Positions 1 through 50,339 of a stretch of 52,522 nucleotides of DNA are shown here, piece by piece (within the stretch, counting starts at the first letter, position 1; each line of letters starts with the position of its first letter). The position numbers and the translations under genes are program-made. Location of the stretch: the NCBI GenBank assembly GCA_011109175.1, contig RDEW01000037.1:105770-158291 (forward strand). The letters are read 5' to 3'. The notes under the pieces were generated by a model. It was given only the letters and a program-made list of their open reading frames with translations, ran no database searches and was not told where the DNA came from. Origin of the DNA: Dicyema japonicum (taxonomy: Eukaryota > Animalia > Dicyemida).

Positions 1-3000
1 TAATGAATTAGATAATCATGAAATTACACAATCTACAAAAGTTTTCTACATTAAATGTGTTTTGATATGGACAATAGCTTTATCCATATTATTATAATGA
101 GTTACATAATCATGATTATTACATAATCTACTATAGTTATTCTTGAGTAATTGTGACTTTATATGGACAATAATTTTATCCATATTAGTTAATGAATTAG
201 ATAATCATGATATTATACAATCTACGAAAATTATTCTAGAGTAATTGTGACACAATCGTCAATAGTGATTTTATAGTAATTATGACTTGATATTCACTAT
301 AGCTATTCCATATTATTGTAATGAATTAGATAATCATGATTATTACATAATCGACTATAGTTATTCAACAGTAATTATGACTTTTTATGGAATATAGCAC
401 TATCCATATTATTGTAATGAAATTAGATAATCATGATTATTACATAATCTACTATAGTTATTCTACAATAATTATGACTTGATGCATATATCGTTATCCA
501 TATAATTGTAAAGAATTAGATAATCATGATTATTAATAATCTACTATAGTTATTCTAGAGTAATTGGACTTTATATGGACTATATTTATCCATATTATTG
601 TAATGAATTAGATAATCATGATATTACACAATCTACTATAGTTATTCTACAATAATTATGACTTGATGCACATATCATTATCCATATAATTGTAATGAAT
701 TAGATAATCATGATTATTACATAATCTACTATAGTTATTCCTAGAGAAATTGTGACTTGATATGGAATATATTTATCCATATTAGTTAATGAATTAGATA
801 ATCATGATATTATACAATCTACGATAATTATTCTAGAGTAATTGTGACACAATCGACGATAGTTATTTTACAGTAATTATGACTTTATATTCAATATATG
901 TCTTTATCCACAATTATTGAAATGAATTAGATAATTATGATTATTACATAATCTACAAAAGTTTTCTACATTAAATGTGTCTTGATGTGCACAATAACTT
1001 TATCATATTATTATAATGAGTTACATAATCATGATTATTCATAATCTACTATAGGTTATTCTTCAGTAATAGTGACTTGATATGGACAATAGTTTTATCC
1101 ATATTAGTTAATGAATTAGATAATGATTGTTATTACATAATCTACTATAGTTATTCTTCAGTAATATTGACTTTATATGGACTTTATCCATATAATTGTA
1201 ATGAATTAGATAATCATGATTATTACATAATCTACTATATTTTTCTAGAATAATTATGACTTGATGCAATATAGCGTTATCCATATTATTGTAATGAATT
1301 AGATAATCATGATATTACACAATCTACGATAATTATTCTAAAGTAATTGTGACACAATCGACAATAGTTATTTTACAGTAATTATGACTTTATATTGAAT
1401 ATATGTCTTTAATCCATATTATTGTAATGAATTAGATAATTATGATTATTACATAATCTACAAAAGTTTTCTACAATAATTATGACTTGATGCACTATAT
1501 CTTTATCCATATTATTGTAATGAATTAGATAATCATGATTATTACATAATCTACTATAGTTTCTACATTAAATGTGACTTGATGCACTATAGCTTTATCC
1601 ATATTATTGTAATGAATTAGATAATCATAATCATTTTCACAATCTACAATAATTATTCTGGAGTAATTGTGACTTGATATGGACTTTATTCATATAATTG
1701 TAATGAATTAGATAATCATGATTATTACATAATCTACAATAGTTTTCTACAGTAATTGTGACTTTATATGGACTATATGCTTTATCCACATAATTGTAAT
1801 GAATTAGATAATCATGATTATTACATAATCTAAAATAGTTTTCTACATTAAATGTGTTTTGATGTGCACTCTAACTTTATCCATATTATTATAATGACTT
1901 ACATAATCATTATTATTAGATAATCTACTATAGTTTTCTACAATAATTATTCCTTGATGCACTATATCGTTATCCATATTGTAATAATTAGATAATCATG
2001 ATATTACACAATCTACAAAAGTTTTCTACATTAAATGTGTCTTGATATGGACAATAATTATCCATATTATTGTAATGACTTACATAATCATGATATTAGA
2101 TAATCTACTATAGTTATTCTTCAGTAATTGTGACTTGATATGGACCATATATTATCAATATTAGTTAATGAATTAGATAATCATGATTATTACATAATCT
2201 ACTATAGTTATCTTGAGTAATATTGACTTATATGGACTATAGCTTCATCCATATATTGTAATGAATTATATAATCATGATTATTACATAATCTACAAAAG
2301 TTTTCTACAATAATTATGACTTGATGCACTATAACGTTATCCATATAATTATAATGACTTAGATAATCATGATATTACACAATCTACTATAATTATTCTA
2401 CAGTAATTGTGACACAATCGACGATAGCTATTTTACAGTAATTATGACTTTATATTCAATATATGTCTTTATCCATATTATTGTAATGAATTAGATAATT
2501 ATGATTATTACATAATCTACTATAGTTTCTACAGTAAATGTGTCTTGATGCACTATATCGTTATCCACATTATTGTAATGAATTATATAATTATGATTAT
2601 TACATAATCTACTATAGTTTCTACATTAAATATGTCTTGATGCACTATATCGTTATCCATATTATTGTAATGACTTAATAATCATGATTATTACATAATC
2701 TACTATAGTTATTCTAGAGTAATATTGACTTTATATGGACTATATCCATATAATTGTAATGAATTAGATAATCATGATTATTACATAATCTACAATAGTT
2801 TTCTACAGTAATTGTGACTTGATATGGAATATATGCTTTATCCACATTATTGTAATGAATTAGATAATTAAATTACACATAATCTAGAATAGTTTTCTAC
2901 ATTAAATGTGACTTGATGTGCAATCTAACTCTATCCATATTATTATAATGAATTACATAATCATGATCATTACCTAATCTACAATAATTTTCTAGAGTAA

Positions 3001-3583
3001 TTGTGATTTGATGGACTATAGTATTATCCATATTATTGTAATGAATTAGATAATCATGATATTACACAATCAACGATAGTTTTTCTAAACTAATTGTGAC
3101 TTGATGTGCACTATAAATTATCCATATTATTGTAATGAATTAGATAATCATTATCATTACCCAATCTACGAACGTTATTCTACTGTAATTGTGACTTGAG
3201 ATGCACTATAATTTATCCATATTATTTAATGAATTAGATAATCATAATCATTACACAATCAACGATAGTTTTTCTAAACTAATTGTGATTTGATGTGCAC
3301 TATAACTCTATCCATATTATTGTAATGAATTAGATAATCATGATCATTACACAATCTAAGAAAGTTATGCATCACTAATTGAGACTTGATGTGCACTTTA
3401 TCCATATTATTGTAATGAATTAGATAATCATGATCATTACCCAATCTACGATAATTTTCTAGACTAATTGTGATTTGATGCAATATAGCTCTATCCATAT
3501 TATTGTAATGAATTAGATAATCATAATCATTACCTAATCTACAATAATTTTCTAGAGTAATTGTGATTTGATATGGACTATAT
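1..3583. repeat. AT-rich satellite array, ~93-95 bp monomer, ~36-38 copies, some ~130 bp long variants
   Basis: TAATGAATTAGATAATCATG recurs about every 94 bp (e.g. near 1, 95, 190, 320, 415, 508, 601). The array runs off the left edge and ends abruptly at ~3583. Confidence 0.97.
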
Positions 3584-4177
3584 AAAAGCAAGTTCTCCAG
3601 TTTGTCCAAAGTAGATAGGTCAAAGGAGAAATTTTTCTTGCAGGAGCCAGGAGGAGGAACATAAACATTCGCAATTTCAATTTTTCCAATGGAAGTTATA
3701 ACAGAGATTCCAATTATCTCCGTGTTCGATCTTCCATTAAGCTCTTGTGAAGAGAAGGGTTCTCGAGGTATTTTATTGCTTTTCTCACAAGAGTCAGTAG
3801 ACCCCTCCTTGGCCAGATGGGCGGTCGGATCTTACTGTGTTGTATCCGTTAAAGAGAGGAGTACGAATGTTATTTGAAAGTTTCGTTTCCTGGAGAAGGC
3901 AGATGTCCACTCTGTTCCTCTCCAAGAATAAGGAAAGTTCGGCAATTTTTCCTCTGATCCGTTTATGTTTAAGCTTTGATTGTTAACTTCTTTGGGCCTG
4001 GGTTTTGTTTTACGTCTACTGAGGTCAACAGTCTCAATCGATAGAATGTTCCAACAGTGAGAGAATGCCGTCCAGTGGGAAGTCCTCTGGTTGGTAGAGT
4101 GCAAATGGTTCTTTTTAGATATAGTTTAGGAATATATCCGACGCCACCAGAAACGGTGAACCACATGACGCACGCTA
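3584..4177 (-). mobile_element. 5' fragment of Ingi/Vingi-like LINE: pseudoknot, 2A-like peptide, AP endonuclease (decayed)
   Basis: Minus strand reads RLRLLTSVDVKQNPGP, then LNING, VDICLLQETKL, GLLTLVRK and IANVYVPP (APE motifs) across frameshifts. It is truncated at the satellite edge. Confidence 0.85.
4106..4171 (-). ncRNA. HDV-topology nested pseudoknot, copy 1
   Basis: P1 GCGTC/GGCGT, J1/2 ATG, P2 TGGTTC/GAACCA, P3 ACC/GGT, P4 GATAT/ATATC, A-rich linker CTAAAAA. Paired by eye. Confidence 0.6.
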
Positions 4178-4199
4178 AAATTAATAAAACAGCTATGCA

Positions 4200-4330
4200 A
4201 ACCGTGATTTTAGCTTTACTCCAGAGTAATAACTAACGTACTTCAGTATGAAACAAAAGCAGTTCCTAATTCTTCACATAGTATTTTAAAAAGTCGATGA
4301 TTTGTCGAACAACATTCTTGCCATTGTCAA
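4200..4330 (-). mobile_element. hAT (Buster-like) transposase scrap
   Basis: Minus strand reads RLFKILCEELG...FHTEVR*L, resembling the hAT LLFHTEVRWLS motif. Confidence 0.55.
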
Positions 4331-4789
4331 TGCGGCATGTTTTATTATATTTTCTCCAGAATATGACCTCTATTTGGGGAACCTATTTAAAAAAATGCCC
4401 CAAAAACAGAGGTTTCCTCAAAAATGGAGGTTCGGCATTTTCTTTAGATTTATCTACAGTTTAACAATTTAAATCTGCTTTTTTATTAAATTTATAGATA
4501 AATAATGTTTTTTTATAGATTTTTCAGAATTATATTTATTTAACGATAGGAAAATAATACTGTTAATTTCCCTCTGGTTGCTGATTTTTTCATTTGCATT
4601 CCTAATATTTTTATGAAATTATAATAATCTTTCAAAGCTTCAGGAAACAAATTGAAAATGTTCTCTTCAAGTGTATTCATCGCTGTTATTGTTTCCAAAT
4701 GAGAATAGGTACATTTTACTCCGTCGTATATATTCTCGTCATCATTTTCTACTTCATTTTCAGTAAATCTTTTTTTTAATTTTTTTTAA

Positions 4790-7650
4790 TTTAAAAATTT
4801 ATTATTAAAAAACATGAGTAGTTAATTACTGAGTACAGCGGATATGATCAAGTGGCTGTCCTTGGAAAAGCCACTCGGTTTCTCTTTCTAAGGAAAGAGA
4901 CCGTCTTGGGGCCAAAGACTCCTCTCGTCTCGACGACCACTGGCTGTACATGGAAACGGTTTAGGAGGCTGCTGTATTTCTTTATTTTTGAGTTTTCATA
5001 TAAACGGGCGGCCTCTCCCGCTTTCATTGCCGACCTCAAAAGTTTCGACTGGGAAAAGCTGTCAGTACAGGCAGCATCCCAAATTAAGCATTTGCCCCGA
5101 GAGAAGGGGAATACAGTCGCTTCCCATTATCCTACTCATGCCCGTTGGCTCTAAATGGATGGGTATCCCGCCAACTCGAGGGCGCGCTTCACCACTTCAT
5201 TTATAGCCTTGTGTCTAGCGAATCGACCTGCGCTTTTTCAACAAAAAAGGGCATGATGTCCATAGCAGTCGACTTTCCGGCCGCATCGGCACTCAAGGGG
5301 TTGGCAAACTTTCAATCCAAGTCTGATGGAGACTCCGGTGCGGACGGTTTCATCGTCTAAGTGAGTTTCCACGTTTCCAGTGGGTAGGGCATTGATCCAA
5401 GCCCCGCTCCACTCGCATCTTGCAGTTAAAAGACAGGCTCGTCGGTGTTGGTTAGATATTTTCAAAAGCCTCTCGTATTTATCCTCGCAGACAGACTCAT
5501 AAAGGTCTCTCTGCCCGGGTTGTTTGACTTTAGGGTGTACCAAATCTTCGATCTTTGACGACTCTGATGGGAGCTGGAGAATCATCATGATCAAATTCTG
5601 ATTGGAGTCCAATGAGGATTGATTTGCCGGGTGTGCTAAATCATATGGTGAGAGAATTCCGAGTCCACCAAAGCGAACGGGCAAGGTTGCTTGTTCCCAT
5701 CCTTGTTCGTCGAATTCGACATTAGTAATACGTTCGGTCGTAGACCGGAATAGGGAATCAATCGCCCCGAGTTGTTGCATTTTCAGGTAACATGGAGCTC
5801 CTCGAAAGACGTAATTTAATTTCTGCGAGGATAAAGCGTTTTTCATGAGAAAAGAGAGGTATGTGCATCCAGCATCCCAAGGCGTAAAAAAGTTTTTTTT
5901 AGTTGCTGTTCTTTAGCCAACAGAGTGTCGTTAATTCCAGTTTCAGCCAAAGTGCATCCAAGTATTTCTAAATGATCCGGCTCGATTTCCGATATTTTAG
6001 GAATAATCTCCCGAAACATTAATAGGATCCGATTCCATTCATATCGGGAGAATCCATAATTAACAATTTCGCATTTGGATGCGTTTAGCTTTAAACCAAG
6101 CGTATCCAATTGGGTTAGTAATCTCTGTAGACAGTCATCTACATTGTTAGGATGACCTCCCAGGGTGTAATCATCCAAATACCACACGTTCAGCGGAGTA
6201 GTAAGGCATCTCATGACACGGTCGACACCGAGGCAGAACAATGCCGGTCCTAGTGGGTCTCCTTGCTGAACCACACGACGAGGGAATGAAGTATTTCCCA
6301 TGTACAAGACTGGACGGTTTTCCATACGAACAATGAACATAATTATATATAGACGGGTAATGGGTAAGACAATCTTCCAAAATTACATCGCGCCGTATGG
6401 TATTGAAGGCGTTTTTTATGTCAATCTTGAGGACCACACAAGGCATGTTCGTTCTGTTTCCAGTAAACATCCGAACGGCATGAACCGCCGCCTCACATCC
6501 ACCAGGAGTACCGACCCCTACTTGGGTTGGTCGCAGTTGTTTGACAAGCATCGGAAGGATTGCTCTGCTAGCAAGTTTAGAAGCCAGTCGACGAAAAACA
6601 AACCCAACAGCAATAGGACGAATTCCTCCTCCACATTTATCAAAGGCAATTAACTTGGCGGAAAACATAATATGACGGATTGCTTCTGGTAATCTTCCGG
6701 AAAGCATTCTGTTGATTAACCTCGTTATAGCCGATAATAGCCGAACACCAGAGTTCCCCGTATTCTGATCAATTAAGTCTTTTAGGTGTCCTGGACGGAG
6801 TCCGTCGAGTCCGCCACTGCTGCTGGGGCGAATGAGAGGATCGCATCTTTCACGTCCCCCTCAGAAATAATCAGACTAGGTAATTCTCCAGAGCAAGTAG
6901 GGATCTGCTCGTCCACTGGCGGACCAGGATGTCGTTCAACCAGTGCATCGTAGGAGTGTTCAGTTGGCTCAATTAGACGGTTATGCTCTTCTAGAGTCCT
7001 CACGGCGGCCCGGACTCCACCTTCAGATAGTTTGCGATGTATCGCTCTTCAATCAATCTTTGTGTTTCTGAGGCATGGTTCTCGTGGTTTGAGGGCTTGA
7101 AGGTATATTCTCGGGAGTCACTGAACAAATTTCCAGAAGAAAACAAGCAAATATTTTCTTTTACAATAGCGTGAGCGATTCCTGATCTTTCCTCTTCTGA
7201 CAGGGCATACATAGCGTGTATGGTGCAAAGTAGAATAATCGTGTCCAATCACTGGTTCAGTCGAAGAAATTGCCCTTTCAATACAATCGTGTAAACAGTC
7301 GGCGGCAGGAACACGGGGAGCTTTTGGAATTTTGATCATGATCCTTCGTGTAGATGCCAAGTTTGCAATTTATTCAAGGGTTTTCTGGTAATCTATTGGT
7401 ATTCGTTCAGGTGAATTAGGTGGAGTCGATGGTGCTTTCGTCCCAGGAAGTAGGCATGCCTGGCAACACCAGTTGGTAATGGTGGTAAGGGCTTTTTTGG
7501 TCATTCCAACACATGACATGTGAAAAACCGACGAACAAACGACACAACATATCAGCCGCTTTCTTTTGTTAATTTTATTGCAAAATTCACAAAGCTCTTC
7601 TCTTTTGTCGATCTTGTGCATATCGCTTCTGGTTACTTTTTCTCAATTAC
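4790..7650 (-). mobile_element. CRE/SLACS-clade non-LTR retrotransposon, near full length, frameshifted (PHD finger, RT, restriction-like endonuclease)
   Basis: N-terminal C4HC3 PHD finger (CEFC...CCVVCSSVFHMSC...WCCQAC), RT motifs GGGIRPIAVG, QQGDPLGPALF and WYLDD, C-terminal CRCG...HAL.C...RH..IN and PVVVETRG. Confidence 0.92.
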
Positions 7651-16079: not shown

Positions 16080-16855
16080 TTCATTTATTTATTTATTTTT
16101 ATTTATTTTAATAACCCCGGGAACACCGAGAAAGAAAGACAAGAGTCAAACAGTTAGGTGATCCCAGTCCTTGCAATCAATTATGCCATTCGACGTCTGT
16201 GATCTTCCATCGTCCTCACTACTTTCCGGAAGAGCCTTCTCTCGGTCTTGCAGAGGAATCCGATCGGGGAGGGGAATTTCTTATCCAATCGGTTTTCTCT
16301 TGCCATGGGAAGGATCAGGCGAAGCGGATTTCCATCTTCCTCACAGACTCGAAGAAATCCGGAGCCACCGACTACGGATCTTAGCTTCCATGAGTAGTGG
16401 GTCGACTGTTGATCCATTACGTGGGCAAAGCATACTGATTGTTTTCTGGTGTATTGAGTTGACTCTTTGGACCATAGACTCCGATAGCGCGAATCTCCAT
16501 GCAACGGAGGCATACTCAACGGCAGGCGAAATTGTTTGTTGGTAGAGGGTAGAAACGGAAAAGTCCATGTTCCTCGTGGTCCTCCGGACAATGGCGCGTA
16601 AAACGTTAACTTTCTGGAGGCCCCTGGTAATCATGTCTGTTGCGTGGGAGTTGAAATTGAGAAGACTGTTGTACTTGACTCCAAGGACAGTGTGGGACCT
16701 TGTCACTGGAATCCGAGTGGGACCAATAAAGATACTCGGTTCATCCTTGGAACGACGGTCCGAAGTGAAAGTGGAACAGATGGACTTGGTTGCAGAAATC
16801 GTAATTCGATTGCCAACAATCCAATCGTGGAGAGTGTTCTATTTTGTCTGAGTTT
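16080..16855 (-). mobile_element. 3' portion of I/Ingi-group LINE (RT C-terminus and tail)
   Basis: TVLGVKYNSLLNF...STLYQQTISPAVEYASVAW, GGGATCAC motif and A-rich tail. Very similar to 49440-50020. Confidence 0.85.
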
Positions 16856-16885
16856 TAAGATTATTTTTGAAAATGTTGTTAGCGT

Positions 16886-16945
16886 GGTGTCATGTGGCTC
16901 ACCAGAAATGGTGTCACCCATTCCAAAATGAAACGAAAAGAGCCA
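16886..16945 (+). ncRNA. HDV-topology nested pseudoknot, copy 2
   Basis: P1 GGTGTC/GTCACC (one mismatch), J1/2 ATG, P2 TGGCTC/GAGCCA, P3 ACC/GGT, small P4, linker CGAAAA. Confidence 0.65.
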
Positions 16946-17016
16946 ACAGCTTCTCCCCACCGTCTGGTGGTCCTTTCATCTCCTGTGTCTTCGACCCTGT
17001 CTGGTGTCCCCATTTA

Positions 17017-17067
17017 TCCAGACTTTTGATTCTTCTATGTGGAGACGTCGAAACCAATCCTGGTCCA
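17017..17067 (+). other. StopGo/2A ribosome-skipping peptide SRLLILLCGDVETNPGP
   Basis: Exact D(V/I)ExNPGP consensus with upstream hydrophobic LLxxC/G segment, in frame with the APE domain. Confidence 0.9.
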
Positions 17068-19243
17068 TGGAGATGTTTTACAATTATACAATTGAATACG
17101 AATGGGATCAGGAAGAAAATCTTTGAACTCCGGGCACTCCTCCTCGAAAATGAGGCTGACCTCGCTTTAATACAGGAGTCCAAGCTATCTCCCTCCATAC
17201 CAACACCCTCTTTTCCCGGATACACAGTGATCCGTAAAGATCGTCAGGGAGGACGCGGAGGAGGACTACTTACTATTATAAAGAACGATATTCCTTTTAT
17301 GGATACAACTCAACGAACCTCAGAGCTTCTTGGCTCCGACAAGACTTTGGCGCAGATTACTGTCAAAATGGAGTTATTCCTGTCCTTTTGGATCCATTTG
17401 GCTAATTTATATATATTTCCTTTTGGATCCATTTGGCCTCCATAAGGATCGTGTCCGTCATCTTACACCCCTGATTTATCACGCATTTCAACATTGAAAA
17501 ATCTACTGTTATGTGGGGATCTTAATGCACGACATCCAGTTTGGCTCACTTCCCAATCTTCTGATAACCGAGGAGAACTCATTGCAAATTATCTTCCTGA
17601 CCTGATTATACTGAACAACCCTAACTCACATACGAGGACCCCATTAAGGATGACTGATAGCTGCACATCCCCCGACTTAACACTATGCTCACTTCTCTGG
17701 CTAGACTATTTCCTGGAACGTCTTTTACGGCTTCTCCAGTGACCACAATCCAATCCTCCTAAAACTGAGAGGTCTTCGACGATACAGGAGACGGCCGGCG
17801 GAATCAAAAAGATTCAAGGATTATACGAAGGTTGACTGGTCTGGTTTCAGTAACCTTGTGGATAAATTCTTGGCTCGGAGATTATCCTTCCCAATACGCT
17901 CCATTGATGAGGCCGCTGAAATTATCAGCGCTGCCATTCAGAAAGCTGACCATATTTTTATTCCTATATCGTCATACAAGAAGTTTATTCCTACCCTCAG
18001 CTCTTATACAATAAGTCTTATAAAACAAAGAGACCGGCTGAAGAGATGCCATCTGTTGGACATGAAGTCTTTGACAGCCCTCAGACAACTGAATAAAAGG
18101 ATCTGTCAGAGCATAAAAGAACACAAGGACAAGAGATGGCAGCATCTAGTTAACCACCTCGACAGGAAAAGTACATCCCGACATTTCTGGAAAACTCTTA
18201 AACAAGTCAAGTCGGAGCTGGATGATGCAGACGGAACCGGAAAGTCTTCTCCTGAACACTTATGCCACCTACATCCTAACACCCTTATGAAACATTACGC
18301 TGGAATTAGCTTCAAACCATTCTCGAAACACCTGGACATTAAGGTGCGTGCCCATAAACCGAAGAAGGAACCTTACCACGAACTATTCACAGATGACCAA
18401 GTCTTGGATGTGATCACCAGATTAAGAGGCCTGACAAAGTATCTTCTATTCACCTAAAACACCTAAGCCACTACGCAATTGGCTACCTCACGCATATATA
18501 GAACCTCTCCATTAACTATAATATTATTCCAAGATTTGGAAGAATTCTATCATCAGACCGATATTGAAGGCTGGGAAACCAGAGACAGAACCTGCTCCTA
18601 CAGGCCTATTTCCGTTACCAGCACACTGTCAAAAATTATGGAGAAACTTGTATTATCAGTCATTATTCCGTATCTTCTACGTCCTATATTTCAACATGGT
18701 TTCCTCCGCGGTAGGTCCACCGCTACATACTTGGCAACTATCGCAGTTCATTGCCGACGGTTTTAAACCCATCCCCAGCCTCACAAACGCACAATTTTGG
18801 TTTATATTGACATCAACAAAGCCTTTGACACTGTTTCGAGGAAAATCCTGGTTGGAAAAATATTTTCTACTAATATTAGTTCGAATTTGAAATTATGGCT
18901 GGCCAACTTTTGTCTGGAAGACGTGGAAGAGTAGTCAGTGGTGATCTCAGATCTAGATCACGATTACTACCGAATGGGTCACCCCAGGGGTCTCCATTTT
19001 CACCAATTCTATTCAACCTATTCCTACACGACCTACCTAATGATGAGACGAAGATTCCCTGCTATTATCCTACGCAGACGATGTAGTCATTGCAATACGG
19101 AACCGCTCGACGCAAGTTGCATCCATTAAAACTCAAACCAGTTTCATGTGTTAACTGATCGAAAAATAGTGTTAACTGATTGAAAAATAGTTGATTATTT
19201 ACTATTTCAATTATCGTTTTAAAAATAATGCATACCCCATAGG

Positions 19244-21735
19244 ATGGGGAAAGAAGAGAAATCACTTACGTCATTAGTAAAGGAGAATGTCCACACATTT
19301 TTCTCAAGGAACCTATTGGCAGACTCAGAAAAGCTCACCTACAAATTTCAAAACCATGAGAAGCCAACATCGACTATCTCGGACACTCAGAGATTAAGAA
19401 GCTCGATCCGTCGAAAACTTTCGGAAGGTGGTATCCGTGCTGCGGTGAGGATCCTTGCAGATCAACAATGTATAATTGAACCGTCTGAACAGTCCTACGC
19501 ATCACTTGTTGAGCGACACCCAAGTCTCCCCAACGACCACCGGGTTCCCCCTTGCCCAGGACAATTACCCAATCTACTTGTCTCTGAAAAGGACGTAAAA
19601 GATGGATCCTCTCTTTCGTCCCGAGTAGCAGTGGAGGACTAGATGGGCTCCGTCCGGGTCACATCAAAGATCTCATTGCTCATAACACGGGCAACTCTGG
19701 GGTCCGGCTCGTGTTGGCTATCACCAAACTAATGAACAGGATGCTATCAGGGACACTACCAGAAACAATTCGACACGTAATGTTCTCCGCAAAGTTAATC
19801 GCATTCGACAAGAAGGGAGGTGGAATACGCCCTATTGCAGTCGGAATGGTCTTCCGTCGGTTGGCATCAAAGCTTGTATGCAGAGCAATCCTACCTACGC
19901 TGATAACACAGCTGCAACCAACCCAAATAGGGGTCGGCACACCGGGGGGTTGTGAAGCGGCAGTTCATGCTGTCCGAACATTCACCGAAAAGAACGTGAA
20001 CATTCCTCACGTAATCGTCAAAATTGACATTAAAAATGCCTTCAACTCGATACGACGTGATACAATTCTGGAGGATTGCTTCACATACTACCCATCAGTG
20101 TACAGCTATATTCATAGTTCGTACGGAAAACCATCCAGTCTGGTACATGGCCAATATTACATTCCATCGTCTTCTGGAGTCCAACAAGGAGACCCACTGG
20201 GGCCCGCCTTGTTCAGCCTGGGAATTGCCCGTATCACAGGATACTGCTCCACTCCTCTGAGAGTATGGTATTTGGATGATTGCACCATGGGCGGCCATCC
20301 GAAGGATGTACTAGATTGTTTGAAAAGTCTGATAGTACAATTGGAATCCCTATGCCTAACTCTAAACACCAATAAGTGTGAAGTAACCAATTTTGGATTT
20401 CCACAGTCTGAATGGGATCTGATCCTTGGTATGTTCAGAGAGATCATTCCGAAAGCCACAGAAACCAAATCAGAACAACTGGAAATACTTGGATGCCCTC
20501 TTACTGATGCTGGAATCAGTAACACTCTAAGAACAAAAGAACATCAACTAAAAACAACATTCAGACGTCTGGAGATGCTGGACGCACACACCTCCCTATT
20601 CCTCTGAGAAACGCCTTATCAGCACAGAAACTGAACTACGTTCTTCGGGGGGCACCCTGCTACTTGAAAATGCAACAGCTCGATGCTATCGATTCCCTCT
20701 TCCGGAGTACTATTGAACGTATCACAAATGTGAAATTTGACGACCAAGGGTGGGACCAAGCGACCCTACCCGTTAGCCTGGGCGGACTGGGAATCCCTTC
20801 AACGAAAGATCTGGCTTGCCCTGCTTATCTATCCTCTTTGGGCTCCAGCCGACTGCTGGTCAGGATGATTCTCCAACTCCAAACAGAATCATCTGAAATC
20901 ACAGAGATGGAGCATTTGAAGGGGATGATGCCTGAGCAGAAAGATCGTTACAGGACCATCTGCGAGGATAAATATGAGAGGCTTCTGAACCAATCAAACC
21001 AACACAGACGTGCATGTCTAGTCACTGGAAGATGCGAATCGAGTGGCGCATGGATCAATGCACTCCCAGTTGGCAGTGTCGGGACCCATCTTGACGACGA
21101 TACTGTCCGCATCGGCATCTCCACCAGACTTGGACTGGAGATTTGCCGGACCCACAAATGCCGATGTGGCGCAACCGTCGATTGTTATGGACTCCATGCC
21201 CTCTCTTGTCGAAGGAGTGCAGGACGATTCCCAAGACACAAGGCGATCAACGGAATTGTCAAGCGAGCCCTGGAGTCTGCGGGATACCCAGCCATACTAG
21301 AACCTGTTGGTCTGGACAGAGGAGACGGAAAACGTCCCGACGGAATCACAATTTTTTCATTCGAAGAGGGGAAACCTTTGGTCTGGGACGCTACTTGTGT
21401 CGACACGCTTTGCCCGTCCAACATTGTCGGAAGCGCGGTAGACACACTGTATTCCGCGGAAAAAACGATGAGGGCAAAGGAGAAAATACGAAGCGCTACG
21501 CGACCGATTCGCGTTTTATCCGATAATGGTCAAGAAAACTGGAGGAATAAGTGGAAAATCGTTTCGCTTCCTAAAGAAACTTGGACGCTTAGCTACACTA
21601 AAAAGCCACGACGAACGTGAGACTCGGTGGCTACTCCAGTTGATCTCTGTTGCAATTGTGAGAGGCAACGCAACGTCGATAATGTCGACGGGGTCCACTT
21701 TGGATGATGGCAGTTTTAAATATGATTTACTGTAA
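19244..21735 (+). mobile_element. CRE/SLACS-clade non-LTR retrotransposon, 5' truncated, frameshifted
   Basis: GVQQGDPLGPALF, WYLDD, CRCG...HALSC...RHKAIN, KRPDG and WDATCVDT (RT plus REL). Paralogous to 4790-7650. Confidence 0.93.
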
Positions 21736-22386: not shown

Positions 22387-22459
22387 TACCCCGGATGGGA
22401 TTCGAACCCACGACCTTAAGATTATGAGACTTACGCGCTAACCACTGCGCCACCGAGGC
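22387..22459 (-). tRNA. tRNA-Met (CAT), elongator type
   Basis: 73-nt cloverleaf GCCTCGG...CTCATAA...TTCGAAT...CCGGGGTA with a U31-U39 pair. G1 rules out an initiator-type A1-U72 pair. A T6 Pol III terminator follows immediately. Confidence 0.95.
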
Positions 22460-32318: not shown

Positions 32319-32647
32319 TAATTAATTTAATTTAATAACCCCGGATACACTGAGAAACAAGTTAAAGTAAACAACTAATTAAATGTATCCAGTTTCCACT
32401 TCTACAGAAAAAGTCCATCCGGAATCAGCATAAAGGGTAAGACGTCCATAGTTGCAGTTGTGGAAACCCCTCCAGTGGAGTGGGGGAGAGCAAATGATCC
32501 TTTTTTGTGCCGGCCTGGCACTGGGCGCCACCTAGACAGGTAGATCACATGACGCCACTCTAATAGGAAGAGAGGAGGAACAGACGAACAAAACAGAAAC
32601 TTCAATCAATTAGCCACGAAGTACCACATGGCGCCACACGGCAGAAA
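32319..32647 (-). mobile_element. ~330-bp non-autonomous retroelement, copy 1
   Basis: 24-bp TSD CCTTTTGTTGTGGCAACAGATATT (32295-32318 and 32648-32671). Homologous end to end with 48544-48870. LINE-type A-rich tail. Confidence 0.92.
32495..32556 (-). ncRNA. HDV-topology nested pseudoknot, copy 3
   Basis: P1 GGCGTC/GGCGCC, J1/2 ATG, P2 TGATCT/GGATCA, P3 ACC/GGT, P4 (G)TGCC/GGCA(C), A-rich linker. Confidence 0.65.
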
Positions 32648-44241: not shown

Positions 44242-44286
44242 GAATGTCACGTAACTCACCAAACTGGAGACATTTAAAAAGAGTTA
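44242..44286 (+). ncRNA. Nested pseudoknot, copy 4 (no P4)
   Basis: P1 GAATGTC/GACATTT, J1/2 ACG, P2 TAACTC/GAGTTA, P3 CC/GG, linker AAAAA. Confidence 0.55.
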
Positions 44287-44950
44287 CACTGCCCCTATCC
44301 TTCAAGGATGGACTGACAAGGACAACTGTCTTTGTTTGGGGACGTCGAATCGAACCTCGATCCCTAAAAATCATGCAAATAAATATAAACGGGATCAAAT
44401 GTAAGATTATTGAACTCAGAAACCTTATGGAAAATTATCGAATTAATGTCCTTCTATTACAAGAATCCAAACTCAGAAGTGCGAACACAACTCCAAAATT
44501 TCCTGGATACTCAGTTATCCGCAAAGATAGATGTAGAAAACTTGGGAAAGGCTTACTAACTATCATACGAAACGGAATCCCTTATAAAGATATCACCAAA
44601 TATGTCTACAACCGTCTCCATAACCTTGAAAGTATCGAAATTCTGGCCACAAAAATCCAACTCCCAAGGTTACGTATTATTCTGATCAATTCAAATCTAC
44701 CTCTTTCATCATCAGCCAATTGCCTAAAACTTTCGTCGATCAGCTCACTAAAGAACGTTCTTATTTGCGGTTACCTAAATACAAAACATACGCTCTGGCT
44801 GAGAGGTCAGACGTCAAACAAGCGGGAGATATCTTAATCGAAGACTTGAGAACCTTTTGCATCCTAAACGACCCTAACTTTCACAAAAGAACTCCCTCAA
44901 GACAAAACCGTCATCCCCTGACGTTTCAATCACGTCTCCCTTCTTCATTC
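44242..44950 (+). mobile_element. 5' fragment of Ingi/Vingi-like LINE: minimal pseudoknot, decayed 2A, APE
   Basis: QLSLFGDVESN (44338-44355, one nt out of frame) precedes IMQINING...LLQESKL...CGYLN. Confidence 0.82.
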
Positions 44951-47910: not shown

Positions 47911-48543
47911 CATAAAATTCGATTTCCAACTTGCATCTTGTAGATGCATTCAATTTATTTTGAAAAAAGGAAATATCTTTATCTTTTAAATGAGGATGCT
48001 TCATTATAAATGTCGCTTGGAGCAAGCTAACTCTTTCTCTTACATTTTTTGCCGCACATGCGAAGCTATAAATATTATGGCTCTCGTGAAACTGCTAATA
48101 ATAATAGTTTGGAAGGAGCAAGAGACGTGCTATGCATTATATGATGGCATATTACACATTCTGCTGTATGCGGTAAATCAGATCCGTTCTGATAAAATCA
48201 TATGAAGGTAGCTTCCATCATATTTTCTATTATTATAATTATAAAAAACCTTTAGTGAATATTTTTTGGAATATCTTATGCAATTATTGTTTCTCATTTA
48301 AAATCTTATAAGGTTCGCCGGAACCCAGGTTGGGAACCACTTGATTATTGGAACTGGGATTACCTAAATGGGTGACATTTTTTCTGTCTTTCTTTCCCGG
48401 TGATCCCTGAGTTCTAAATAAATAATAATTTATTCAAACTAACCGCTAATGGCCAGGCGAGAGTGAATATTGTCAACGATTGGTTGTCTTCGAACCGACT
48501 AACGATTTCTGCCGAAAAATCAATACGTAGGCCAATCTCAAAT

Positions 48544-48870
48544 TAATTAATTTATTTATTAACCCCGGATACACCGAGAAAGAATTTAAAGTAAACTACT
48601 AATTGAGTGTATCCAGTTTCCACTTCTACAGAAACAGAGTCCATCCGGAATCAGCATAAAAGGTAAGACGTCCACTACATGCAGTTGTGGAAACCCCTCC
48701 AGTGGAGTGGGGAGAGCAAATGATCCTTTTCGCGCCGGCCTGGAACTGGGCGTCACCTAGACAGGTGGATCACATGACGCCAATCTAATAGGAAGAGAAA
48801 AGAGGAACAGACAAGCAAGCAGAAAACTTCAACCAATTAACCACGCAGCACCACATGGCGCACGCGGATA
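48544..48870 (-). mobile_element. ~330-bp non-autonomous retroelement, copy 2
   Basis: 16-bp TSD TAGGCCAATCTCAAAT (48528-48543 and 48871-48886). Homologous to 32319-32647 over the full length. Confidence 0.92.
48721..48781 (-). ncRNA. HDV-topology nested pseudoknot, copy 5
   Basis: P1 GGCGTC/GACGCC, J1/2 ATG, P2 TGATCC/GGATCA, P3 ACC/GGT, imperfect P4, linker CGAAAA. Confidence 0.65.
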
Positions 48871-49439
48871 TAGGCCAATCTCAAATAATAATATAAAATT
48901 AAAAAATATTTAAAGAACAAAATAATTTAATTAAAAATAGATTTAAATTTGTCATACTTTTTTGTTCGTTGTGATGAAACCTGTGACAGTTTCGAAAGAT
49001 GATTTTTTATAAGAGCAGTATAAACAATATGCGAGTATGAATGATCAATAATGTGTCTAGTTCATGCAAAGAGGCATGGATAAACCTCAAATGGAAAAAG
49101 ATTACGAATGTACTATCATTGATCAGCATCACTGGCACCTGGATCTCCCCAGCTTGGGATTCAACTCCAACCTAAAATCATCGGATGAGAATAAACTGAG
49201 AACAGCTCACATGTCATTTGGTGGTTTCAACAGGACTGTTGAGGTTGAGCGGATTTGTTATTAAAGGAGCTAATGAAGGAAATAAAGAAAGAAGATGTCG
49301 AGGAGCCTGCAGTCTGCTATTCTATTTCAAAAAAGTTTAGAAAAGTGACGAAAGGAGGAAATGATAAAAAGAAATTTAAATTATGACTTATTTTGTATTA
49401 AAATATTTTATTAATTTCTTTCGTCTCCACTAGATCTTT

Positions 49440-50020
49440 TCTTGGAGTCAAGTACGACAGTCTACTCAATTTCAACTCCCACGTAAAAGACATGATTACC
49501 AGGGGCCTCCAGAAAATTAACGTTTTACGCGCTCTTGTCCGGAGGACCCCGAGGAACATGGACTTTTCTGTTTCTACCCTCTACCAACAAACAATCGCGC
49601 CAGTCGTTGAGTATGCCTCCGTTGCATGGAGATTCGCGCTATCGGAGACTATGGTCCAAAGAGTCAACTCAATACACCAGAAACAATCAGTATGCTTTGC
49701 CCACGTAATGGATCAACAGTCGACCCACTACTCATGGAATCTAAGATCCGTAGTCGTGGCTCTCGATTTTTTTGCGTCTGTGAGGAAGATAAAAACCCGC
49801 TTCGTCTGATCCTTTCCATGGCAAGAGAAAACCGATTGGATAAGAAATTCCCCTCCCCGATCGGATTCCTCTGCAAGACCGAGAGAAGGCTCTTCCGGAA
49901 AGTAGTGGGGACAATGGAACATCACAGACGTCGAATGGCACAATTGATTGCGAGGACTGGGATCACCTAACTGTTTGACTCTTTTGTCTTTCTTTCTCGG
50001 TGTTCCCGGAATTATTAAAA
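49440..50020 (+). mobile_element. 3' portion of LINE, sister copy of 16080-16855
   Basis: High nucleotide similarity to the reverse complement of 16090-16700, with the same tail. Confidence 0.9.
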
Positions 50021-50339
50021 TAAAAATAGTCCGCTCGGATTCTTCAGTGTTGAGGAACCTTTTTCTCCTTTTATTACTTGGCAATCTATTCCGTGTAATA
50101 CCTAACTTTATACAAAGAATATTATTTTTATCCCATTTTGAGAGATAACTTTTCTTTACTCTGGGATCGATCCCATGTGGTCTCTAATTCTAATCTGATA
50201 CCAAATAAGTCAATTATTGTGACCGTTTCAGATTGAGATACGGCTGAATACGAACCGTTAAAAAATCGATATTCAATGTACCGATTTAAAAAGCCAATCA
50301 AACAAAATGGCAACCGTCCCAACAACAATCTAGTAACAA

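Follow-up and report, generated by a model that had tools for sequence, protein, structure and literature searches.

We analysed a window of 52,522 nucleotides (nt) of the Dicyema japonicum genome (assembly GCA_011109175.1, contig RDEW01000037.1, positions 105,770 to 158,291, forward strand). Its GC content is 37.8%; that of the Dicyema genome is 36.7%, with 49% repeats and long interspersed nuclear elements (LINEs) that are uncharacterised (PMC6736024). From about position 16,877 the window holds a LINE copy, here copy A, whose head combines an RNA pseudoknot with the topology of the hepatitis delta virus (HDV) ribozyme, a short leader and a 2A (StopGo) peptide, followed directly by an apurinic/apyrimidinic endonuclease (APE) and a reverse transcriptase (RT). 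Copies B to E lie elsewhere in the window, and copy F belongs to an intact relative at a locus of another assembly (L001), which also encodes the database protein P0006. Helices (P), loops (L) and joining segments (J) are numbered as in HDV-like ribozymes. The features of copy A are as follows.

16873..16875, + strand: AUG in phase with 2A and APE, 13 nt upstream of the predicted cut, opening ATG TTG TTA GCG
16886..16945, + strand: HDV-like nested double pseudoknot of 60 nt, recognised by covariation, descriptor and conservation
16886-16891 with 16913-16918, + strand: P1
16892..16894, + strand: J1/2 AUG (GUC AUG UGG), kept in copies A, B, D, E and F; annotated start of P0006
16895-16900 with 16940-16945, + strand: P2
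16901-16903 with 16910-16912, + strand: P3
16904-16909, + strand: L3 (6 nt)
16919-16922 with 16927-16930, + strand: P4
C16934 then GAAAA, + strand: J4/2
16946..17040, + strand: leader or spacer, encoding ~32 residues
17041..17067, + strand: 2A/StopGo core GDVETNPGP, with the predicted skip between G (17062-17064) and P (17065-17067)
17068..18046, + strand: AP endonuclease domain and linker, located by tblastn with the L001 APE; frame lost after 17445
18534..19038, + strand: reverse transcriptase fragment in three frames, stopping at residue ~243 of the L001 RT open reading frame (ORF)

The peptide GDVETNPGP is encoded exactly at 17041-17067 (GGA GAC GTC GAA ACC AAT CCT GGT CCA), and a six-frame scan found no other exact D[VI]ExNPGP in the whole window. 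The open frame that carries it, 16867-17445, runs straight into APE (WRCFTIIQLNTNGIRKK...LIQESKL, with the continuation WRCFTIIQLNTNGIRKKIFELRALLLENEADLALIQESKL), and the core begins 95 nt downstream of the end of the knot at 16945. Sequence, open frame and knot end thus all agree with the original prediction of an exact 2A in frame with APE about 95 nt past a pseudoknot. The 2A stands 6-8 residues ahead of the first APE strand, and the leader residues just before it are hydrophobic, the last ~10 reading HLSRLLILLC. We ran phmmer with the 192-residue head against a library of 1.8 billion proteins and inspected the best 150 APE homologues. D[VIL]xxNP[GA]P was found in 54 of these 150, N-terminal of the APE match in every case compared, and the copy A context (LLILLCGDVETNPGP / SRLLILLCGDVETNPGP) appears to fit the LLxxxGDVExNPGP / LLxxxG pattern of those nearest homologues. 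Predicted from sequence in this way, StopGo release of APE-RT from a leader that would be mostly translated RNA fold is well supported; because the 2A ends a few residues before APE, the skipped product would begin with proline just ahead of the enzyme.

Downstream of the head, copy A has decayed. Its APE is 47% identical to that of L001 over residues 52-264 (tblastn), and the tblastn matches of L001 proteins cover the APE at 17020-18046 and RT pieces at 18534-19038, with the frame shifting along the way. Copy A is therefore a dead element, frameshifted and either cut off or interrupted in its RT.

The elements of the knot follow the order P1-P2-P3-L3-P3'-P1'-P4-J4/2-P2', which is the topology of the HDV ribozyme. 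We counted covariation over 15 pairs in an alignment of five copies, which represent three lineages (A; B and F; D and E). Of the aligned cells, 98.6% were paired, against 30-55% in controls in which partners were slid, and four pairs, three of them in P2, showed compensatory changes. All five copies keep the G at the start of P1 and the J4/2 sequence C-N-AAAA ahead of the 3' strand of P2; the P4 hairpin is present throughout, but its place and length differ among lineages. We then wrote a strict descriptor that required G at +1, a P1 and a P2 of 6-7 bp each, a 3-bp P3, and C then purines before P2'. It matched copies A, B, D and E and one stray site in the window, whereas shuffled windows gave 0.95 matches each, and it matched the L001 locus exactly once, at copy F. 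Copies D and E themselves came to light through a 15-nt motif of the knot, GTCAYGTRRNTCACC, which has seven matches in the window against 1.4 expected. Topology, covariation and conservation, rather than a curated model, carry the assignment. The knot is most likely a self-cleaving ribozyme of the HDV family or the direct descendant of one.

Assembled contigs show how common this head is and which parts of it are constrained. Logan contigs from four runs of one sample were aligned to 16650-17250 with a likeness threshold of 80%. They numbered in the thousands, run X1 alone supplying 2,592, so the family is highly repeated. Contig depth fell tenfold across 16860-16880, and each of the four runs had a cluster of loose ends with poorly agreeing A-rich flanks at 16877. 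The family therefore has its 5' boundary at about this position, and the DNA to the left of it is another LINE fragment on the opposite strand.

We called a site variable at a share of at least 10% among family contigs. No variable site fell among the 30 paired bases of P1, P2 and P3, and the four variable sites in the knot all lay in L3, P4 or J4/2 and were all non-synonymous. Because the paired bases are invariant while every variable knot site changes the protein, the constraint on the knot acts on RNA and not on protein. Ten sites varied in the 79-nt leader, where protein constraint is weak except beside the 2A. There, at 17016-17043, all four variable sites are synonymous in the 2A frame, 17043 being the third base of the core Gly codon, and the DVETNPGP codons show no variation among genomic copies. 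The knot is thus constrained as RNA, the 2A as protein and the leader between them only weakly; the module of this abundant LINE family is genuine and under selection. It is highly improbable that the motifs are chance matches or functionless fossils in every copy: copies A, B and C of the window are all broken, which such a reading would expect, but an intact relative exists, the knot covaries, the 2A motif recurs among the APE homologues, and thousands of contigs conserve the paired bases and vary only synonymously at the 2A.

The same stretch offers further observations. The 19 nt after P2 (16946-16964) are invariant among genomic copies, and a hairpin CCACC GUCU GGUGG can form within them, as is also possible in D and E. 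In two of the three reading frames no stop interrupts 16886-17027, and the third has a single TGA at 16929-16931; the family-majority letter at 16931 (A>G) changes this TGA to TGG.

The intact relative was reached through P0006, a phmmer match that begins MWFTFSGGAGYSPKRYLKRTICSPPTRGLPPGRHLLNVGTYYRLLLLTSGDVEQNPGPKLTIQCLNIDGIRGK, is co-linear with copy B and reads MWFT...GDVEQNPGP-KLTIQCLNIDG. The annotation assigns it to Octopus sinensis as an uncharacterised protein (LOC115229065), encoded on a contig of 509 kb in GCA_006345805.1. Dicyema lives as a parasite in octopus kidneys; if the genome of the window is that of a dicyemid, this Octopus sinensis contig is probably parasite DNA in a host assembly. 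The locus, L001 (VCDQ01001009.1, 376041-383174, GCA_006345805.1), has the following features, numbered within the locus.

2996-3061: knot (copy F)
2974-4134: APE ORF, open
4368-5432: RT ORF
after the RT: C-terminal ORF of 141 residues
near 5845-5870: (AAT)n tail

The element is ~2.9 kb long (about 2987-5870) and is described as a single-ORF APE-RT. Pfam matched only Exo_endo_phos and RVT_1 in its three ORFs, with no RNase H, and ~140 residues follow the RT. No target duplications were found around this intact copy. Within 1.8 kb upstream of it, no + strand ORF of at least 100 residues was found. Together with the 5' boundary of the family in the window, beyond which lies a different LINE fragment, this settles that the element has no ORF1, as had been predicted; a search for intact copies had also been proposed, and the one found has no separate ORF1 upstream.

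Four other copies lie in the window.

3583..4171, - strand: copy B, with its knot at 4171-4106, VDVKQNPGP at 4016-3993 and APE remnants with stops
44242..44896, + strand: copy C, with a reduced knot at 44242-44286, GDVESNLDP then a stop at 44341-44367, and APE in another frame
48547..48872, - strand: copy D, ~330 bp, with its knot at 48781-48721 and the target duplication TGAGATTGGCCTA
32319..32647, - strand: copy E, with its knot at 32556-32495 and a ~23-bp target duplication

Copies B and C repeat the order of knot, 2A and APE, so that part of the original prediction stands; as specimens of the module they are poorer, B being decayed and C degenerate. The 2A of both deviates at key residues (F has GDVEQNPGP), and the knot of copy C has neither P4 nor the C of J4/2.

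Copies D and E are non-autonomous elements of ~330 bp that are ~93% alike. Each consists of a ~90-nt head, the knot, the LINE leader with a decayed 2A region, the LINE 3' end and an A/T-rich simple-repeat tail of the (TAAA)n type, which is also found on the full LINE fragment ending at 16098. Their heads show only a weak A-box-like match to the tRNA-Met of the window. E sits in the APE of another LINE (32823-32632 and 32317-31667). The knots of D and E are the best paired of all copies, with a P1 of 7 bp that is perfect in D. Because these short derivatives keep the knot, the 5' module matters in cis. An apparent third A-like knot at 48376-48420 arose from the alignment alone: what lies there is the 3' end of a LINE, tail included.

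On this evidence we favour, as the rather probable reading, that copy A preserves the head of an APE-type LINE with a single ORF, compact at ~2.9 kb and present in very many copies, in which an HDV-type fold, a spacer and a 2A act in succession. The 60-nt fold would occupy part of the first ~25 codons of the ORF, a spacer of ~30 codons nearly indifferent in protein sequence would come next, and the canonical 2A/StopGo would come last. Judging from the 2A motif, the ribosome would most likely skip the Gly-Pro bond and shed a leader peptide of ~64 residues whose sequence is dictated by the RNA fold, releasing an APE-RT that starts with proline a few residues before the endonuclease core. The 2A release would in this way stand in for a separate ORF1 or an arrangement in the 5' untranslated region. 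The knot would be kept by selection at the RNA level and, given its retention in the short non-autonomous derivatives, would be required in cis; by analogy with L1Tc, R2 and RTE, a ribozyme in this position may trim read-through transcripts and leave a structured 5' end that aids translation.

The candidate start codons bear on whether the fold cleaves. The AUG at 16873 is homologous to ATG TTT TTA GCG at 2983 of L001, and an upstream AUG is in phase with the 2A in both subfamilies (168 nt and 165 nt away) even though the lengths of P1 and P4 differ. The J1/2 AUG is in frame with the 2A in B, where it opens a 58-codon leader, and in F. In copy A a GUG in the 2A frame (16894-16896) overlaps the J1/2 AUG. 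A programmed -1 frameshift that would link the frame of the J1/2 AUG with that of the 2A was considered and rejected, as inspection by eye found no slippery heptamer before the TGA at 17027. A 3' splice or trans-splice acceptor (a T-rich tract with TTAG) was rejected as well: the tract is better read as the ATG TTN TTA GCG of the upstream start, which is why TTAG is common upstream of the knots.

Several observations weigh against a ribozyme that processes the 5' end of this element. Copy A itself is dead. The sole AUG in phase with the 2A in the A family, at 16873, lies upstream of the cut, and the J1/2 AUG of copy A is +1 out of frame and ends at TGA 17027-17029; no indel with a share of at least 10% among family contigs restores its frame, which makes it probable that the whole A family shares this arrangement. 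Conserved family sequence begins at about 16877, ~9 nt upstream of the predicted cut at G16886, the sequence TTAGNNT before the cut is common to A, B, F, D and E, and D and E moved together with ~90 nt that precede the cut. The boundary, the conservation of the upstream AUG and the make-up of D and E together imply that the RNAs copied into DNA were not cut there.

Further observations against a ribozyme concern the fold itself. No Rfam HDV-family model matched, either across the whole window at the gathering score or in stretches of 100-700 nt at E values up to 10. HDV and CPEB3 have a G.U pair at the foot of P1; here the foot is G-C in A, D, E and F and G.U in B alone. P1.1 is indistinct in A, with a possible P1.1 in D and E (UG in L3 with CA after P1) and in B and F. 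Nested minimum-free-energy folding gave z-scores of -0.3 to -0.9 for four knots, values that say nothing for or against the fold because the method ignores pseudoknots.

Much of this would be expected if an HDV fold cleaved rarely or not at all and served as structural RNA within a translated leader. Translation would then start at the AUG 12-13 nt upstream, on an ordinary capped transcript that begins shortly before it. The fold would act in cis as a signal for an element protein at the 5' end, or else shield or modulate the RNA, and the 2A would discard the peptide that the fold encodes. The upstream AUG held in phase in two diverged subfamilies despite indels, the family boundary upstream of the cut, the internal position of the knot in D and E behind their transposed heads, the want of an Rfam match for the window copies and the out-of-frame J1/2 AUG of the A family all favour such a fold. 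Set against it, every core HDV-like feature is present, including the C then purines of J4/2 and the G at +1; copy C, having lost that C and P4, has a dead 2A as well; the known LINE 5' folds of the same topology (R2, L1Tc, RTE) cleave; and the GUG at 16894-16896 could initiate in the 2A frame on cut RNA. We consider a non-cleaving or rarely cleaving fold rather unlikely. For the HDV-type ribozyme that we prefer, self-cleavage is plausible from its sequence yet at odds with the position of the start codon and with the 5' end of the family, and cleavage may affect part of the transcripts. The proposal that the element is translated from an uncapped, cleaved mRNA is not supported by this anatomy, in which conserved sequence and an in-frame AUG precede the cut and D and E retain their heads.

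The nearest known parallel is the trypanosome element L1Tc, which combines the Pr77/L1TcRz ribozyme, a 2A and the short derivative NARTc (PMC3185411, PMC3383444). As in L1Tc/ingi, the present element has a 5' HDV-like fold and an N-terminal 2A on a single APE-RT polyprotein, with no ORF1 (PMC3185411, PMC3383444), and D and E, its short derivatives, retain the 5' module together with the 3' end, as NARTc/RIME do. L1TcRz cuts exactly at +1 of its element (PMC3383444), the cut marking the first base, whereas in the present family the predicted cut is preceded by conserved sequence and an in-frame AUG. L1Tc further differs in having RNase H, C2H2 motifs and a poly(A) tail, where the present family has no RNase H and microsatellite-like tails, and in its kinetoplastid host, the host here being an animal. 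The L1Tc-like strategy that had been put forward therefore holds for the layout (5' knot of HDV topology, leader, 2A, APE-RT, no ORF1) and is not supported for the cleaved, uncapped RNA.

Nor is the strategy special to this parasite: LINEs with one ORF and a 2A head were published in 2013 from molluscs, sea urchins, amphioxus and cnidarians, among them the mollusc element Ingi-1_AC (PMC3708506). In that study, Odon et al. described about 50 2A-bearing LINEs from vertebrates, amphioxus, molluscs, sea urchin and cnidarians, most without ORF1, among CR1, L2, Rex1 and Crack elements and Ingi-1_AC (PMC3708506). These resemble the present element in a 2A 40-80 residues from the N terminus, in some cases directly before APE, in the absence of ORF1 and in hosts that include spiralians (PMC3708506). 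They differ in their leader, which here is largely a translated RNA pseudoknot; the word 'ribozyme' does not occur in the text of that paper (PMC3708506).

The other half of the module has its own parallels in animal LINEs. Its nested double pseudoknot at the 5' end is shared with R2, R4, R6, SART, Baggins and RTE, where the fold is proposed to process co-transcripts and to promote translation initiation. Ruminski et al. in 2011 and Eickbush and Eickbush in 2010 are said to have described the HDV-like ribozymes that head these elements. No 2A has been reported in them, unlike here, and the present fold is short (60-66 nt, with a P2 of 6 bp), misses the Rfam HDV models and stands in a position relative to the 5' end of the element that misfits simple 5' processing. 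Reports cited in PMC13725137 credit 5' HDV-like ribozymes with promoting translation or unconventional initiation.

Outside the window and L001, we ran the descriptor on five further 2A-LINE loci (L002 to L006). In L003, a TARA metagenome scaffold whose APE is 45% identical, the sole match (138-215) lies 34 nt upstream of the start of an ORF that carries GDVEVNPGP 80 residues in. The L3 of this candidate ribozyme is UUCACGC. Among Rfam models it comes closest to the HDV-like drz-agam-1, whose gathering score of 37 lies far above the 14.4 bits (E 0.97) obtained. A fold entirely upstream of the ORF start is the classical ribozyme arrangement and counts against a fold that does not cleave. L002, L004 and L005 had no descriptor match upstream of the 2A, and L006 had a doubtful one inside the ORF. 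The pairing of fold and 2A thus reaches beyond the Dicyema genome; either it is not universal or the descriptor is too strict.

As a unit, the fold, 2A and APE-RT without ORF1 are known only from trypanosome L1Tc/ingi, and the two halves separately from animal LINEs. Their combination in a dicyemid-type animal, and probably in a second marine animal (L003), suggests that the two devices travel together more widely, and it offers a simple rationale for the N-terminal 2A peptides of LINEs. A stronger version, which we think unlikely, is that fold and 2A are one functional unit recurring across LINE clades, in which the 2A discards the peptide of the fold and the ribozyme is a switch between transcript fates and not just a maker of 5' ends. 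Because an essential 5' fold must sit at the start of the RNA, it would be translated. With the start codon of this family upstream of the cut, uncut RNA would then be a translatable, full-length template and cut RNA would be decapitated or differently initiated, and such a unit would explain why 2A-bearing LINEs tend to be without ORF1. Nothing here overturns current understanding, as both devices, and their combination in L1Tc, have already been published. About half of the Dicyema genome is repeats, with uncharacterised LINEs (PMC6736024), and the present family is among the abundant ones. LINEs that are compact and have a single ORF now serve as tools for gene insertion (PMC13708176), which gives their 5' modules practical interest.

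The clade of the element bears on how it came by the module. One possibility, doubtful in our view, is that it belongs to the Ingi/Vingi lineage and inherited the module from an ancestor common with L1Tc, rather than assembling it convergently. Like Vingi, it is a compact (~3 kb), single-ORF APE-RT without RNase H that gives rise to internally deleted derivatives (PMC5786205, PMC13708176), and some Vingi SINE2 (short interspersed nuclear elements) likewise have bodies from the extreme 5' part of the LINE (PMC5786205, PMC13708176). Only RTE and Vingi are reported to have given rise to SINE bodies from the 5' parts of LINEs (PMC5786205), and bipartite non-autonomous derivatives together with SINE-like bodies of this kind only for RTE, Ingi, Vingi and R2 (PMC5786205). 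An Ingi-clade LINE of a mollusc, Ingi-1_AC, moreover has a highly active 2A (PMC3708506). Several points speak against this placement. The lack of RNase H in L001 argues against Ingi proper, Odon et al. found no 2A in Vingi (PMC3708506), and where L1Tc has poly(A) the present tails are microsatellite-like, (TAAA)n and (AAT)n. Names are few among the RT homologues, and those given are automatic ones of Jockey type, such as 'transposon BS'; 2A heads are commonest in CR1, L2 and Rex1. A sequence search of the PDB matched only the RTs of R2 and L1 and the endonuclease of TRAS1. The compact APE and RT without RNase H and the internally deleted copies D and E agree with descriptions of Vingi, but these features are common to RTE and others. 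Compactness, the single ORF and the bipartite derivatives may thus indicate Vingi but fit RTE as well, and the microsatellite tails and the frequency of 2A in CR1, L2 and Rex1 leave these three as candidates.

Other repeats surround these copies. LINE 3' parts lie at 16098-16880 (- strand) and 48423-50028 (+ strand); the two are 93.6% identical over the 3' ~590 bp (16102-16690 and 49436-50024) and only ~67% alike over the ~90 bp at their 5' ends. They seem to share one starting point in the RT, a hint that a truncated subfamily is being amplified. A different RT family (GGGIRPIAVG ... VWYLDDCTMGG) occurs at 19711-21620 (+ strand) and at about 6050-6320 (- strand), and the 318-residue ORF that follows this RT has a Cys/His-rich stretch (HKCRCG...CYGLHALSC) and no Pfam match. 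From about 1 to 3600 runs an AT-rich tandem array with units of ~100 nt (…TAGATAATCATGATTATTACATAATC…), which gave many false matches in loose structure searches. An intact tRNA-Met (CAU), scoring 67.6 bits, lies between LINE fragments at 22387-22459 (- strand).

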